Shown: piece by piece, positions 33,254 through 44,351 of the stretch | How positions within the stretch are numbered: position 1 is the first letter of the stretch | Layout: each line of letters starts with the position of its first letter | Made by a program: the position numbers and the translations under genes | DNA from: Adineta vaga | Taxonomy: Eukaryota; Animalia; Rotifera | Direction of reading: 5' to 3' | Assembly (NCBI GenBank): GCA_021613535.1 | Contig: CP075492.1 | Location: 11,904,001-11,968,000, forward strand | Length of the DNA: 64,000 bases | Notes under the pieces: generated by a model | What the model was told of the DNA's origin: nothing | Seen by the model: the letters and a program-made list of their open reading frames with translations, nothing else | Database searches by the model: none

Positions 33254-33547
33254 AGATTAAAAACAAACAAACAAGCAAACATTTTTTTCTTGTAAAAATA
33301 AATATATTCATTATAATTTTATGTTGAATAATAATGTGTTCAGAACTACATCAGAAAATTCTTGAAAGACGAACATACAAGCGACAATCATGATGATGTC
33401 GCACTCTGATAAGTTCTATAGATCAATCTATTTGACCAATGATAAGCTATCCGTCAATATGTTGGATTCCTTTTTCCTTATTTCATATTGTAGTAAAATG
33501 TAATTCAGTTAATCGATATTTTAGTTCTAGTTTAATTTCATTTCTAG

Positions 33548-34036: not shown

Positions 34037-34592
34037 TATGCAACATAAATAAAGATCATTATCTTGTTTATTTCATTTCTCTTATAATATAAAAGATCTG
34101 ATAAATGAAATTTTCGAACGAATCGGAGAATATCTCATAGTTACAGAAAAATGAAATTTAATTCTATTGTAGATCGAATTCAAACTCACTGCATCATCAA
34201 AATAAAGTAAAAACATACAAGATCAGTTTTCTATGAGACATTTGAACTTTTCGAACGATCATTCAACTATATGAGACACAAAACAGATTTCTTCTTTGCC
34301 TTTCAAACATATGATAAAGACGATAACAATTGAAATTGATCGAATACAGAGAATGATTATTAACTAGATTGACGATCATACATGTTCGTCATTTTTTCAT
34401 TGAGTGCACTATGTGCTATACACATACCTTGTTTTAAACCAGTTAGATCACCTAGAAGAATAGAAAAAAAAATCAAATAAAAATCGTTGTCTTTCTTTCT
34501 TTCTTTTTTCCATTGTTTTTTCTTATTCGTCATATTATACAGCAACAACGACAAATCCTATCGATATTTTAAATATGTAATTTTATTTTTAG

Positions 34593-36804
34593 ATGTATCC
34601 AATCCGTCAATATTCCTACTCTTTTTTTCGACGTTTATATTCACCAATTTCGATTCGTTATCAATCAACTACAAGTACTGATCTAACGAAAACGTCTCCA
34701 TCTGATCTTGAACAAAAACCAATTCAAGATTATACACCATGGGCAACATCTGAAACCAATCGATTAATTGATTATTTATCCATGCGAATCAAAGCAGCAG
34801 GACCTATCACAGTCGCTGATTTTATGCATGAAGCATTATTAAATCCTCGATATGTACGCCATTTCTCATTCTATTCGTAGTATACCTATGAAAAAGAATA
34901 AATACAATCGTTATGATCATTTTTTTTCTCTCTTTCTCTCTTCCTAGGGTTATAATAAACGACATGAAATATACGGGAAAAAAGATGCTCTAATCGCAAC
35001 ACCTGAAATTAGTCAACTATTTGCTGAAGTAAGAAACAAAAAAAACACAACTTTGACGTTCTTCGAGTTTTCTTTCTAATAAAATGTTAAATATTTATTT
35101 ATTAGTCATTAGTTAAATGGATTATGCATGAACATTCAACAATCGGAGGAAATGTATTACAATTGGTGGAAATGGGAGGAGGACGAGGTATAATACTAAA
35201 TCGAATTATTTCAGTAAGTATGATTAAAATTGAACAAAAACAAAAATCATCTTTCGATTTTCTAGTTATTGAAACAAAATCGATATTCTTATCGATTTAC
35301 ATTCTTTGCTATATACGAAACGAATCCATTAATGCGAAGACGTCAAGCAGAAACCTTATTGGGCCGATCGGTATAATAAAAACATGCAGAATATTCATTC
35401 GAAATTGTTCGTTAATCTTTAGTTTAATCCATTAATTGCCAATGATTATAGAGTAAAAGATGGAGATTATTCATTAATATGGATTGATGATTTTAAACAA
35501 TTACTTCCACATGATACATATTTTCTTGCGAATGAATTTTTTAATGTTTATCCTATTCATAAATTTCAAGTAAGATTTCTTATTAACATAAAATCATGTT
35601 TTAAAAAAGATTCATGTAATGTTTAAAAGAAAACTTCACAAGGTTGGAAAGAAGTTATGATTGATTGGAATCCATTATCAAAACAACTTCATTATGTATT
35701 ATCAATGAAAGCAACATCAATGAGTCGACTTTATATGAATGTATGTAGGAAATATTTAGAAAGAATTGATTTATAATGGAGTTTTGATTTAGTATTTACA
35801 AAGTATTACTAATCGAGAACATATAGAAATCAGTCCACAACGAACTATGATGATGCAAGCAATGTGTAAACATTTAACAAAATATGGAGGATCAGCTTTA
35901 ATTGGAGATTATGGTCATTGGGGTGAAAAAGGTGATACATTTCGTGTAAGTAGAGATGATATACGATGAATGAAGGATTTGTGTATAATTTGAGGTTTGA
36001 AAGTAAGATAAAAGGCACTAGAACTAAAACTAAAGAGCATAGTATTTATATGAAATATTAATTTCTATAAATAGAATATATGCATCTTGAAAGGAAATGT
36101 AAGTTAAGGATATATATATATATATATATGGAAAGAAAAAGAACAAAAGTCAAAGTCTTTTAGCAGACCTTGTCTTGTCAGAATTAGTCTGTTTTATTAG
36201 ATTAAGCATAAAAATATGTGTTCACAGGCATAGTTTTCTATTATTAGCAATGAGAAAAATTGGTTTAGATATTAAATTGTCCGGAAGGGTTATTTATAGT
36301 GATGGAACAAGGATGAAAATTTAATTTTGATTTTAATATATATATTATGTTCCATTTACAAGGCTTTTCGTAAAGATGAATTAGTCGATCCACTTGCCGA
36401 TCCTGGTAATGTTGATATTGTAGCTGATGTTGATTTCGAACAATTATCAATACATGGAATGCAAGTACCGAATGGTAAAATTCTCTAACACAACTTTTGC
36501 TTCATTTATTCTGATAAATTTTAGTTCAATTCTTTGGACCTATTTCACAAGCAAGTTTTCTATATAATTTAGATTTTCACAAACGATTAGATGTAAGTAC
36601 TATGATTTTTAATCGATAGAATGAACTTAAAAGTTTTCTTTATAGAAAATTCTATGCAACAAAACACCGGAAGAACAAGAAGACATTTTGAATGATGTAG
36701 AGAAACTAGTTAGTTCAGAATATATGGGTGAACGATTTTTATATATTTGTGCACAACGAACGAATAAAATAAATGCACCTGCGGGTTTTACGTCTTCGGA
36801 ATGA
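34593..36804 (+). CDS. NDUFAF7: Mitochondrial arginine methyltransferase NDUFAF7/MidA-like (multi-exon)
   Basis: Arg/Ser-rich targeting peptide; GPITVADFMHEAL, TPEISQLFAE, LVEMGGGRG, ANEFF..PIHKFQ, DYGH..DTFR, ADVDF, MGERF..PAGF. Confidence 0.88.
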
Positions 36805-36812
36805 ATAGGAGA

Positions 36813-36832
36813 TTGATTTTGTTTCTTTTCAG
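36813..36832 (+). promoter_or_regulatory. Polypyrimidine tract plus CAG splice acceptor directly on the TKFC start codon (candidate trans-splice site)
   Basis: ttgattttgtttcttttcag|ATG, with no GT donor that could form an intron within the 28-nt spacer. Confidence 0.6.
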
Positions 36833-38994
36833 ATGCCTGGACATTTTATTAACGAAATTCATTCATGTGTAGATGATTCATTAGTTGGTTATGTTCGTAC
36901 GCATAGCCATTTAGAACTCGCCGGTCGAGCGGTTATTACACGATCACCCATACCATCTGTTGCTATTATCAGTGGAAATGGATCGGGCCATGAACCAGCG
37001 ATGGTAAGATACCTGAGATAATAAATTATTGAAAGATGTTTGAAAGATATGCTTAGGTTGGTTTTGTCGGTCGTGGAATGTTATGTGCTTGTAAGATTTT
37101 TCGAAAAAGACAATATGGAATATAGAATAGATTGTTTATTCTTTCAGCTATTGCGGGTTCGATATTTGCATCACCACCTTCATCGGATATTTTTCGATTG
37201 ATTGTGGAATTGAAACGTCGTGGAGCAAAGCAAATACTTTTGATTATCCTTAATTATACGGGCGATCGACTTAATTTTGGTTTAGCTATGGAACGTGCTC
37301 GAGAATTAGCAATCGATATTGATATGTTAGTTGTCGCTGATGATGTTGCAGTAAGCAATCCAATTGGGTAAATAATTAAAAAAACAATGTGTAGATGAGA
37401 AACAGCCGTATATTGTTGTGAACATTTGTTTTGTAGACCTCGTGGTTTAGCAGGAGCTCTATTAGTTATCAAGGTGGCAGGTGCATTAGCTGAAGAAGGG
37501 AAAAATATGAGTGAAATTGTTGATGTTTGTCAACAAGTTCGTGGACATTTACGTACCATTGGTTTATCTGCTTCTGGTATCCGAGCACCAGGTCAACAAC
37601 AATCATTTGAAGTTTGTTTCCGTCGTATTGATTCTTTTCAAACATATTTGACAATTTTCTTTGATTTTAGTTACTCGATGATGAAATGGAACTCGGTATG
37701 GGTATTCATGGTGAAAGTGGTGTTCAAAAATTAAAATTATTACCATGTCGTCAGGCAATTGATTTAGCATTAGGCCAATTATTCAATGGACCGGGTACAT
37801 TAGATCTCAAACCGGACAATAGTGTACTTTTATTCGTAAATAATCTTGGTATGTATTGATTTGTACGATTTTGTTGAAGTCTTCTTTTGTTATTATAATT
37901 TTCTAGGTGGCTGTTCAAATCTTGAAATAGGTATTATTGTTAAAGATGCTATTGAAAATTTAGAACGTCGAAAATTTCATGTTAAACGTGTCATTTGTGG
38001 TGAGCTGATGACTTCATTTAATATGAGAGGTTTTTCATTAACTGTACTTAAAATTGCATCGGATATGAGTACAACAATTTTGAATTTACTTGATTCATCA
38101 ACGGATGCATTTTCATGGCCAAAAACAATTAGTGCAACACAAGCAGCAAATAGTATTCAAGCATTATCAGATTCGTTAGAATTCAATGATCAATTCAGTG
38201 CACAACTTGTTCTCAGGTAAAAAAAGATTTTATTAAATAGAGACAAATCAAATTATATTGATCTTCTAGTGAATCACATCTGTCATTCGATGCATCAGTA
38301 GCTGATTTAGTTAAACAAGCTTTACATGCAGTTGTTCGACAACTTCACAATGATGCTGATGCACTTAATCATTTAGATGCTGTATTAGGTGATGGTGATA
38401 CAGGTACAACATTTACTCGTGCTGCCGATACTATTGCGCGTGATCTTACTAATGGAAAATTAGCATTCGATCGTCCCTCCTCACTATTTCGTCGTCTTGG
38501 TCTTATCGCAGAAAGTCGGATGGGTGGTACCTGTGGAGCAAGTAAACAATAATTTTGCTATGATTTTCATCTCAATCGTTTTTTTCTTAGTTTGTGGTTT
38601 ATTTTTTGCGGCAGCTGCTAAGCAATTATCTCTATCAAATCATTCAACGAAAACTATTGAAAGTCTTTGTGATGCATTCGAAGCTGGTATACAATCCGTT
38701 GAATCATATGCACGTGTACAACCAGGTGATAAAAGTTTATTAGATGCACTTATTCCCGCTGTCGATTTTATTAAATCTAAACGTGCACAACAAACATTTA
38801 CAGTGCACGATTGGAAAGAACTAGCTATTGTAGCTGATCGAGCCGCTCAGGAAACAAAAACTTTTGCACCAAAAGTTGGACGAGCTTCGTATGTTAAAGC
38901 AGTCGACATTCATACAGCTGATCCAGGTGCTTGTGCTATTGCACTTATTCTTAAAGCTATCAGTGATGTTTTTATTAAATCATCTAACCATTAA
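36833..38994 (+). CDS. TKFC: Dihydroxyacetone kinase / triokinase-FMN cyclase (DhaK + DhaL domains)
   Basis: ISGNGSGHEPA, GSIFASP, NYTGDRLNFGLA, RGLAG, ELGMGIHGE, LDAVLGDGDTG, MGGTCG, GDKSLLDAL, GRASY, DPGA. Confidence 0.95.
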
Positions 38995-39494
38995 ATCTCA
39001 TTTATACTGCAATCTAACACAACTTTATATTGACATCTCATTTTTTTCTCTTCGACATTTTTTTTTCTTTATTCAGCTGCATTCCAAATTGATTCTTTTT
39101 TTCGTGGCAATTTATTAATATGTATTTGAGTTTTAATCGAACGTTGTTCTTTTTGAATATTATCAAAGATAATAAAGAATTATTTCATAAGATTCGAAAA
39201 TAACTATCCATCAAAAGTAAGCACGAAACTTTGCTTTTACAATCTGAGATGTACTGATCGAATTTTCATGATTGTATACATATAAGTCGAAATCTGTCGG
39301 TGATTTATTTCAAAACATATAACTTTCGTATTCTCCTGTCCTTTCATCGGATACGCAAAAAAGAAAACAAATAACAATCAATATGATTTTCGTTTTGTCA
39401 TACGAGAAAGAATACATAAAACAATACTAACAAGAATGAAAATATCTGTACATATACACAAACACATTATCGATCAAATCTCAATTAAATTATC

Positions 39495-42400
39495 TCATTC
39501 TGGTGAATCAGATTGGAGAACTTTTTTTATCGTTATACCTAATATATTTGAATTGTTCGTACTAATAACATTGTATGTGCATGGTGATTGTACTTCTTCA
39601 ATTGGATCTGTCTCTTTTGTTAGCTCTGATGCCGTTGATGAAGAAAGAATATCAAAAACATTCGAATCTTGTTCCATTATTTTCACAGAATCATTATTAT
39701 CGATTGAAGTGGTGTTTTCTTCTACAAGACGAGTCGGTATTTTCACTGATCTTGTTCGTGTACGACGCAATTCATTGAATGACATAAATAATGTTCGTAG
39801 ATGTTTTTCGATCTGATCACGTTGAATGATTGTTACGAATGGTAAATTATCATCATTATCATCAATAGAACGAGGTTTTTTCACTGTTCGAGGAGTGATC
39901 GAACGTGGTCGTATACTAGATTTACCATATTTATAACGTTGTCGTTTTTTATTATTTTTTTTTGAATTCATTGAAAAAATCATTGAATCATTGACTGTTT
40001 TTTTCAATAAATCTTCTTTCGAATCTGTCGTTGAATTCACATCATCTTCATTCTCATGATTTTGAGTATCAGTATTTGTAAATGCTACTGACGATTCATA
40101 ACCAGATGAACATGAAGGAATGGTGTCATCAAGTTGAATTCTTTCATCATTACAATCACTGGAATCAACAATAACAAATGAATTATCAACATCTGATTGA
40201 TGTAAATCTTCAATTGGTTGTTCTTCTTCCACAGAAGCAACTACAGGCATGACATCATCGTCATTGTCATCATCATGATCACTGACTATCGGACATGTTA
40301 GTTGACAATTTGGTGATTTCATTGAAATATCATTGATGACCAATGTATTTGAATTATTTGGAAGTAAAGGTTCGATATCAAGTGAGAGAGTATCCGTAGA
40401 TGGATTTGATTCATTGATAATTGATGGCGAAGGTTGAGAACGAGTTATTGGAACTATAGTTTTACGTTTTTTGGCTCCTGAAATCGATATGAATATATGA
40501 GAAGAAAAAACTATAATACACATACCTGCTAATATAGATGCTTTCGTCATCTGTTGTTGGAATAATTCATTTTCTGATGTTGGTAGTAAAGTCATATTAA
40601 TTGATCCATGTTTTAGATCATTCAATAGTGCAATACATCTTTCAAGATGTCGTTGATAAATAAAATCATCATCATCACCCTCAACATAATCGGAATGATG
40701 TTTCAATACTTTTTTTTCTTCGTCATCTAATTTAACCAATGGTAAAAGTAAATTTGTTTGACACCATTGAATAAACTTATGATAGTCAATATCGAACGAA
40801 AATTGTCGAAAGATATTTTTAATCAATATTTTCCAATCATTGACGGGTGTATCAACTGATTTTACAATTGCATTTAAGGAATGACGATCATGAAAGATCG
40901 TCTTTACTTCTGGTTGTTTTATCGATTGAGTTTGTTTCGATGAGGAATAATTATAAAATGATGGATGATGAATCATTGGATTGACTACGACATTCGTTGG
41001 TGGACATTTGCTTGATTTACATGTTGCTGCTGACGACACAGCTAGAAAGATGAAGAAGAAGAATGTTTTGAAGTAAAAATTTTTATCATACCAATAGGCT
41101 TCGATGAGGATGATGTATTGTTTATAATTGCATTCGATAATTTATTCTTTTCATATTGTTGATGTTCATGTAATGTTCGAAAATGAATCGGTGATTGTAA
41201 ATTTGAACATTTTATATTAAATATATCAACAAGTAATGTATCATGTGTGAGTGGTGATGTATCAATAGAAAAGTAGATGAATAGTAAATTGATATAATCA
41301 ATTTCATATTGTCTTGGTGCACGTGCACTACGTTTTGCTTGTAGAAGTATATTGGGTAATGTTTGAAATGTATATAATAATGGAACATAAAAACGATTAT
41401 TTTGAACAATATATGGAATCAGTCTATTATCATTCATTAACAGTGCTCCACCTTTATGTGTTAGAACATTTGCATGATATTTATTCACTTGTGTTCGTGG
41501 TTGTTTCGTAGGTAAAAATTTGATGTATAGAATACGATCGATACCAGCCATCACATGATAGAGATTGACTAGTAGTGTTTTTTCTGGAACTTTTTCATCG
41601 AAGATATTAATATTTGTAATGAGACTATTTAAAATGTCAAAATCTTGTTGCGTAGCTTTGATAAGTAATTTTTTGAATGAAAATTCTTGATCCGAAAAGA
41701 TGTTACATTTAATAAGAATTTCATATGGTACATAAAATTCACGTTGTAATTGAGGAATTGGTTGACGTGAACGAGATTTTATTGAGTCATTGTCACGTAG
41801 TTTCATTTTGACAATATATGGTATGAAAACATTATTGATTTGTACCCAACCTGATTGTTTTGAATTAGTTGAAGATTGTTCCTGTTGACGAGCTATTTGT
41901 AAGGAAACATCTGAAGTATTGGGAAGTGATTGAATTTTAGATGAATTTTTCATAGATGAAGTAACTTGTGTAGGCAATTCAAATGATGATACGTTCGATT
42001 TTGATGGAAGCGCAGGTGAGAGTGTTGTTGGTGGTCGTGATGGTAATGTAGCAATAGGATTTTTAAATGTCGTTGACGATATTGAATCGCGTAATTTTCG
42101 TAATGTATTATAAAACTCTAGAAGATCTTCGTAGCGAATAAGACAATCTGTCGTTGGAATTGTTTTACAATGGACACTTGCTAAATGCCATTCAACAATT
42201 GAACGAAATAATTTTAATTCAGATTCGGTATATGAATAAGAAACTAGCGGTGGGAGAGAACGAGCTAATACTAAATGTCGTTGCCAAGATTCACTTTGAA
42301 ATAGAGTATTTTCCACATACATTTTCGATGTATAACGATGACAGAGACTATTTTCATATCTGAAGGCAGAATTACAATGATAAATATGTTTGAAAAATGT

Positions 42401-44351
42401 TTTCTTCATTTATACCTGTAGATCACTGGTAAATATCTTCCTTCGATTTCTTCCCATGAAAATTGATTTAGACGACTTGTTTGATCCATTGTTGATGATA
42501 TGTAAGATTTTCTTATTGTGGAATTATTTGTTGTTATGTTACTTAGTAATTTTGTCATTTCTATTGGATCGACAAGAGATTGATGAGGATAAGGATGTTG
42601 TGCGTTGATATGATTAAAGTGATGCATATTTAGAGGAGGAGGTGGAGGAGCTGCAGTAATTACTTCTGATAGATGCAGATTTTTAACCATGGCTAACTGT
42701 TGTTTATTCTGAAGATTTTCAAATTTAATTGGTGATGTCATATCTGTTGTATTAGACGAACATTGACGATCATCTAAAGACGAAAACAAACATAGATAAA
42801 CTAAGGTCGAATAAAATAGGTACTTATGGTAGTTACAGAAAACGTTTAATTTTCATGTACTTGTATGTTATCGTATAGTCTATTTTTAATGTTCTTGATA
42901 AGAGGGAAATTTATCTGAAGTACATAAAGTTTTTCTGATATTTTTCTCATCTTTTCAATGCAAATCATGTGAATTTTAATGTAAACGAAGGGCTAAAGAG
43001 TAGGGCCCGACCCTTCGTTGTACTTCTTCATTCTCTCGATAACGATAGCAGTAAGGACGGCTACCATTTTCAATCGTTCGCTCTCTCTGTCTCTCTCCCA
43101 ATGCTGCCTTTTCTACATCAAGAAAGTATGTACGCTTTTGCCTGTAACATATTACACATTAAAGTGCGAACAAAAAAACCTCGTGTATAGAAAAGGAGGA
43201 AAAGAAGAGACATAGCCGACGTCGGTGTTGTACGTACCACGAAGAAAAAAGCTGATTGGCTTTGTAGGAAAAGTTTTCCATTCATAACAGATAGTGTATA
43301 AGAAATAATTCTACAACTATTTTTCTTCTTCTTCTTCTTCTTAACAATGATCAATCTATCAAAATGGTACGATTTTCAAAATCTCATCTTATGACAAATA
43401 TAAATTCATACTTATTAACCTCATCTCCAACATTGTCGAACCATAGAAGATGAGCGAAGATTCAATGATAAATTTCAGCCAATGTGAGAAAGATTCTTTC
43501 TGATAGTATATGTTTAAAACAAAATACGGCGGAACTGTACACAAGTTTTCATTTGATGATTATTTTGTAAAAACAACTACATACACACATGAGTTGCTCA
43601 TAGCAACAGAGAAAGTATCTTATACACAAGTACACATACATTGTTTCTTGACAACTAGAAAACATTTAATGAAGACACATCTTAGAAAAACGATTGTTAA
43701 AGTCATTGAAAACTTTCTCCTAGATTAACGTTAGTTACAAAGTATTCTTTCTCAAATAGTAAGTTGAGAAAAGAAAAACTTAAGCACTCAAACGAAAAAG
43801 GAAACTGTATCTTTAGTAAACGAGATTTTGAAGGGGCGTGTATGTGTACTTGTTAAATAAAAAATAATATGTAGAACAAGCATTTTACCAATGAGAAAAG
43901 TACACGCGTATTTTGAAAATTTCTCTCCCACATTCGTTATCTTTTTTCATTATTTACTAATAACTGTGCTTTTAAGGAATAAGTAAAACTAAATTTTATA
44001 CATTTTTGTATAAAATTCCATCGACTTACCCAATTCAATTGAATGATTCGATAAAATTTTTCGATTTTGTCGTCGCCGACGACGATGACTATCAACAGAG
44101 ACTATATCATGTCTTGAAAGATCGTCAATAATCGGTGGATGATTATGTTTGATCGTAAGAACTGGTAATGATCCATTGCCAACTAGTTGATGTGCACGAC
44201 CATTACAATGTGATCGATCTTCACATCGCCAATAGATCGTACGATTTTGAATTTTATCTTGTACATAACGATGACCGCAATATATCAAACAAGGTTTATG
44301 GCGTTTTGTTTCAGCAAGAGAATATTCATTCGATTGAATCTCTGTTGCCAT
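39495..44351 (-). CDS. FLYWCH zinc-finger protein with four putative Ski/Dach-like repeats (5 exons)
   Basis: The FLYWCH exon (LIYCGHRY..IYWRCEDR..CNGRAH..HNHPP) ends at a phase-1 donor at 44029 (GTAAGT), matching the phase-1 acceptor at 42774. Further short introns join ORFs 42406-42789, 41042-42409 and 39495-41039. Confidence 0.65.

Follow-up and report, generated by a model that had tools for sequence, protein, structure and literature searches.

How is a separate messenger made for a gene whose start codon lies only 28 nt beyond the stop codon of its neighbour? This question is raised by two co-oriented genes of the bdelloid rotifer Adineta vaga, which lie in a 64,000-nt stretch of contig CP075492.1 that was analysed as a whole and is referred to here as the window. 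A first-pass annotation of this DNA had placed the NDUFAF7 stop (TGA) at 36802-36804 and the TKFC ATG at 36833 on the same strand, with a T-rich tract and CAG directly on that ATG, and the window sequence bears this out. Gene models built by coordinates close without internal stops for both genes. The features needed for the argument are as follows.

34587-34592, plus strand: acceptor-like site abutting the NDUFAF7 ATG (TTTTAG in the window, TTGCAG in one relative and TTTCAG in most)
34593-36804, plus strand: NDUFAF7, the upstream cistron; 10 exons, 434 aa, Pfam Methyltransf_28; the faster-diverging of two ohnologs
36593-36645, plus strand: NDUFAF7 intron 9, with a phase-0 donor joined to 36646 in all four RNA studies
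36646-36804, plus strand: NDUFAF7 exon 10, constrained as coding sequence (differences at the three codon positions 0.20/0.12/0.43)
36763-36773, plus strand: two overlapping AATAAA hexamers (36763-36768 and 36768-36773) in the NDUFAF7 coding sequence, candidate poly(A) signals
36800-36805, plus strand: AATGAA overlapping the NDUFAF7 stop, a possible alternative poly(A) signal
36805-36832, plus strand: intercistronic spacer of 28 nt (26-69 nt across 19 bdelloid loci), still present in a relative's dicistronic RNA contig
36813-36832, plus strand: putative branch site TTGAT, pyrimidine tract and TTTCAG acceptor (36827-36832), the TTTCAG invariant in 19 loci
36833-38994, plus strand: TKFC, the downstream cistron; 8 exons, 587 aa, Pfam Dak1 and Dak2
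39171-39176, plus strand: AATAAA at the end of the unit; one RNA contig stops at 39192

The spacer itself cannot hold a cis intron, as had been claimed at the outset, because its sole GT sits 12 nt from its end and the shortest introns at the locus measure 49-50 nt. We compared 19 junctions of both ohnolog types, from loci that include A. ricciae, three Rotaria species and many metagenome bdelloids; these loci are interrelated and two are near duplicates, so that they do not amount to 19 independent events. TTTCAG abuts the TKFC ATG in all 19 while the other spacer bases vary, which places the acceptor beyond chance. The same hexamer accounts for 7 of 186 cis acceptors in these two genes, and none of their 16 cis acceptor sites is invariant. 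Seven of the 19 spacers contain no GT at all and only two have one at least 40 nt from the AG; a usable cis donor ahead of TKFC is accordingly absent from the other 17, and no cis joint into 36833 was listed. The invariance of TTTCAG and the poverty of the spacers in GT together mark the site as a conserved acceptor that lacks a donor of its own in the spacer. Across the genome, no enrichment of TTTCAG before ATG was shown (p = 0.24). Stop-codon read-through was considered as a reason for the spacer lengths and rejected: 12 of the 19 are multiples of three (naive p = 0.007), yet just four are open, neither copy in this genome is in frame, and the lengths of two near-identical versions differ by a single base.

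The tight spacing is kept both in related species, with a median of 51 nt over the 19 loci, and in the homeologous region of this genome, where the copy on C6 (NDUFAF7 at G000:C6:3421470-3423250) has both genes separated by 34 nt. Since both ohnologous copies retain the unit, it is, judged from sequence comparison, older than the duplication that produced them. Window-type NDUFAF7 has drifted in its GDF-T-PE and ELGPGRG motifs in several species and the C6 type keeps both; the diverging copy may have been retained partly through its position at the head of the TKFC operon. In some bdelloid lineages (L044/L045, P0065), TKFC intron 1 has been lost. Loss of the NDUFAF7 stop was met with twice, in P0094 (JGI 3300050821), which reads in frame into TKFC, and in L032, which gains six residues before a new stop.

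The surroundings of the pair were also inspected. A GTA lies 16-31 nt upstream of the acceptor at the NDUFAF7 start in nine of nine loci (the window at 34577-34592, the C6 copy, L020, L022, L024, L025, L027, L040 and L043), several of them with a full AG|GTA donor context; it could belong to a 5' intron of very small size, to tandem acceptors or to a processing element. Further upstream, the ATG of a UXT/prefoldin gene (33500-33547) likewise stands on an acceptor (TAG), which is kept in Rotaria and L027 and absent in A. ricciae. UXT, whose coding sequence is intron-less, is 87% identical to that of A. ricciae and has been lost from the ohnologous region. That absence, together with a UXT-NDUFAF7 gap that varies between 340 and 2292 nt among measured loci, led us to reject UXT as a first cistron of the unit. 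Downstream, on the minus strand of the window at 39495-42409, there are long open reading frames with no Pfam match; the matching gene carries a FLYWCH domain annotation in A. ricciae and is found in synteny on C6.

We consider it probable that NDUFAF7 and TKFC form a dicistronic operon resolved by a spliced leader, as the first-pass annotation had proposed. The conserved acceptor on the TKFC start codon, the leader genes of this genome and a spliced two-gene RNA in a relative all speak for this proposal. A search of the six-contig, 100.8-Mb assembly for the published rotifer leader gave 42 genome-wide matches to its 23 nt, and in the copy that was read a GT donor follows the leader; the 110-nt leader RNA has a folding z of -3.5. 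The first base is T in all 42 copies and G in the published leader. Many of the leader genes form head-to-head pairs about 131 nt apart on C1, C2, C5 and C6 (for example L008:1347-1523), an arrangement that suggests a small bidirectional promoter. The leader was described for the 5' ends of bdelloid mRNAs by Pouchkina-Stantcheva and Tunnacliffe in 2005, as cited in PMC1925144 and PMC3795323, and it is carried by more than half of bdelloid mRNAs (PMC1925144).

Molecules that span both genes, a further prediction of the first annotation, were found in another bdelloid. Two contigs, L034 (JGI 3300002346) and L047 (SRR5248462), run through NDUFAF7, its stop, a 65-66-nt spacer ending in TTTCAG and a whole TKFC frame of 582 aa, with an AATAAA about 18 bases from the 3' end, and show no intron gaps when aligned to both spliced models. 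Genomic fragments 95-96% identical to their TKFC run into TKFC introns 4 and 5, so that the contig represents spliced RNA, or at least a copy of one. The two are 99.9% identical and possibly from one sample, belong to another species and the other ohnolog type than the window, and are assemblies in which overlapping mRNAs could have been merged. Building such a contig requires reads that span the spacer and the ATG. At NDUFAF7, L047 starts with GAG-ATG where the genomes have CAG-ATG, which fits the last three bases of the leader; this is a single diagnostic base, and an upstream exon could also supply it.

RNA of A. vaga itself was available as Logan contigs from four studies, which drop short and rare pieces. 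Both genes are spliced in them as in the models: at least 13 of the 16 introns are listed as joints, two of them shifted by a few bases, and there are two further joints beyond those listed. By depth arithmetic, three runs have NDUFAF7 contigs that stop at 36794 and another has one that stops at about 36811, with no tail seen, and TKFC contigs begin at 36871, 30 bases before an allelic difference; positions 36795-36870, including the TKFC 5' end, thus lie outside contig coverage in three runs, and the listing shows no loose ends. Within these limits no two-gene RNA was seen in the contigs of this species, and no leader tail was present in any contig retrieved from it, where the TKFC 5' end is not reached, or from its relatives. 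RNA contigs from two studies extend over part of intron 7 (35946-36362, 417 nt, containing a TA repeat), which is therefore retained or slowly spliced.

The first annotation had offered, as its alternative, that the phase-0 donor at 36593 could splice to the acceptor at 36833 and give a fusion that might carry a mitochondrial presequence. The arithmetic of this proposal stands: the 36593-36832 splice is in frame and would yield 969 aa, which is the length of a public A. ricciae model, the models of R. sordida and R. socialis are fused as well, the NDUFAF7 N-terminus is basic and acid-poor, and one metagenome frame (P0094) passes through the spacer after loss of the stop. As the main product, however, the fusion finds no support. 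The donor is joined only to 36646 in the four studies (the 36592-36646 joint), whose RNA contigs list no joint into 36833 and hence no 36592-to-36833 junction. Exon 10, which such a splice would skip, is under coding constraint and in all RNA contigs, and with a stop it is retained in every locus read and, together with the spacer, in the relative's RNA contig; a frame continuous from NDUFAF7 into TKFC was encountered only in P0094, at the protein level. A search of the PDB with exon 10 gave no significant match. The fused models themselves come in four lengths (969, 984, 1001 and 1021); a single species supplies two of these lengths from sequence that is alike across the junction. In other assemblies the annotation has two proteins, of 434 and 586-587 aa. 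The fused models look like chimeras of gene prediction, an error known to occur at operons (PMC7986045, PMC12582326), and we regard a real fusion, from this or another phase-0 donor, as very improbable. Because contigs drop rare variants, a slim chance is left for the acceptor to act as a switch, giving cytosolic TKFC in trans and a minor mitochondria-targeted fusion in cis from 36593 under some condition such as desiccation. A related proposal, that the genes are independent and TKFC acquires a cis-spliced 5' UTR exon from within NDUFAF7 with no leader, can appeal to flatworm acceptors, which are often common to cis and trans splicing (PMC12582326). It is hardly credible given the missing joint into 36833, a spacer with no usable donor and the dicistronic contig of the relative.

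A more serious, if still unlikely, rival is that TKFC is transcribed from a promoter of its own within NDUFAF7, the leader replacing an outron, and that the two-gene RNA is read-through or a merged overlap (or comes from a hybrid operon that has both promoters). Monocistronic bdelloid genes commonly receive the leader (PMC1925144), the 417 nt of intron 7 in the window might house a promoter, and start sites are invisible to contigs. Yet a long intron is not common to the loci, being intron 7 in some and intron 8 in others and absent in five, where all measured introns are about 100 nt or less. Exon 10 bears no extra synonymous constraint, its third-position divergence equalling that of TKFC exon 1, and the relative's contig is spliced from the start of NDUFAF7 to the end of TKFC. 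The lack of a shared long intron and the synonymous divergence of exon 10 appear, at the level of sequence, to weaken the case for an internal promoter. That same contig, with its intact spacer and 3' AATAAA, could instead be taken for a two-gene mRNA that stays whole, TKFC being translated by reinitiation and TTTCAG serving as translation context rather than splice site. We give this little credence. The motif, a pyrimidine tract followed by CAG, resembles the site that precedes the NDUFAF7 ATG, at which the RNA contig has GAG for CAG, and Ciona operons also yield unresolved dicistronic cDNAs (PMC1488885).

Under the operon reading, a single transcript would start upstream of NDUFAF7 and run through TKFC, as in the assembled spliced RNA of the related bdelloid, with the introns removed in cis as seen in the RNA joints. 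The 23-nt leader would then be trans-spliced to TTTCAG, giving a capped TKFC mRNA that begins on its ATG with G rather than C at -3, a better start context. The 3' end of the NDUFAF7 mRNA would fall within the 28-nt spacer or where the spacer ends (one contig reaches about 36811), and each cistron would give a separate protein. The only AATAAA signals near the junction are, as first annotated, those within the NDUFAF7 coding sequence, the next lying at 37020 in TKFC intron 1. We rejected the in-frame pair as a selected signal: its Asn and Lys codons do not vary, but AAA is also used at another Lys column in 16 of 16, AAT prevails at other Asn columns and some loci lack the hexamer, a pattern that codon bias explains. 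Several relatives have no AATAAA- or AATGAA-type hexamer after the NDUFAF7 stop; in Ciona, most upstream cistrons lack AATAAA (PMC1488885).

Of the marks of a leader-resolved operon, four were found in bdelloids: co-oriented genes with a very short conserved gap, an acceptor at the downstream gene with no usable cis donor ahead of it, SL RNA genes in the organism and, in a relative, polycistronic RNA in the form of an assembled spliced contig; a leader joined to TKFC and a single promoter upstream of NDUFAF7 are predicted. In the literature searched, which left out most subscription papers, we found no paper showing a rotifer operon. If the reading is correct, leader-resolved operons would extend from nematodes, tunicates, flatworms and chaetognaths to rotifers, and the unit would be of such age that both halves of the duplicated bdelloid genome contain it; to a specialist, operons in a leader-using animal will be expected rather than startling. 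A 28-base spacer in which 3'-end formation and trans-splicing must share the same bases would provide a compact test case for operon resolution. Monogonont rotifers are reported to lack the leader (PMC1925144), so that gain or loss of operons would become testable inside one phylum. The NDUFAF7-TKFC fusion protein of public bdelloid annotations would then be false, and operons may also lie behind further fused models.

Among known systems, the unit resembles the operons of Ciona intestinalis and the SL1-type operons of C. elegans in its unrelated co-oriented genes, very short gap and single leader type, and in the unresolved dicistronic cDNAs (PMC1488885, PMC12582326), of which the relative's contig is the bdelloid counterpart. 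In those operons the upstream poly(A) site abuts the acceptor, while the bdelloid unit is known by its stop-to-ATG gap, which neither establishes nor excludes this class. Oikopleura dioica, with intercistronic regions of 23-30 nt (PMC1488885) and a single leader, also offers a likeness to the 28-nt spacer, but it belongs to another phylum with another leader, and the distance here runs from stop to ATG, not from poly(A) site to acceptor. With the SL2-type operons of C. elegans the unit shares a TTTCAG-type acceptor and the co-transcription of unrelated housekeeping genes; unlike them, with their intercistronic region of about 100 nt and dedicated SL2, it has a stop-to-ATG gap of 28 nt (26-69 nt in the 19 loci). 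On this spacing the NDUFAF7-TKFC pair does not qualify as SL2-type; a single leader sequence was sought and found here. The closest relatives with described operons are the chaetognaths, also Gnathifera (PMC12460157), in which there is no operon-specific leader and the leader differs from that of rotifers; the same paper refers to rotifers once, in a general sentence about operons and trans-splicing, and shows no rotifer operon. The leader with 42 copies in this genome is the one of the 2005 description of bdelloid trans-splicing, which, as cited in PMC1925144 and PMC3795323, concerned mRNA 5' ends, and for which we here propose a role in operon resolution.
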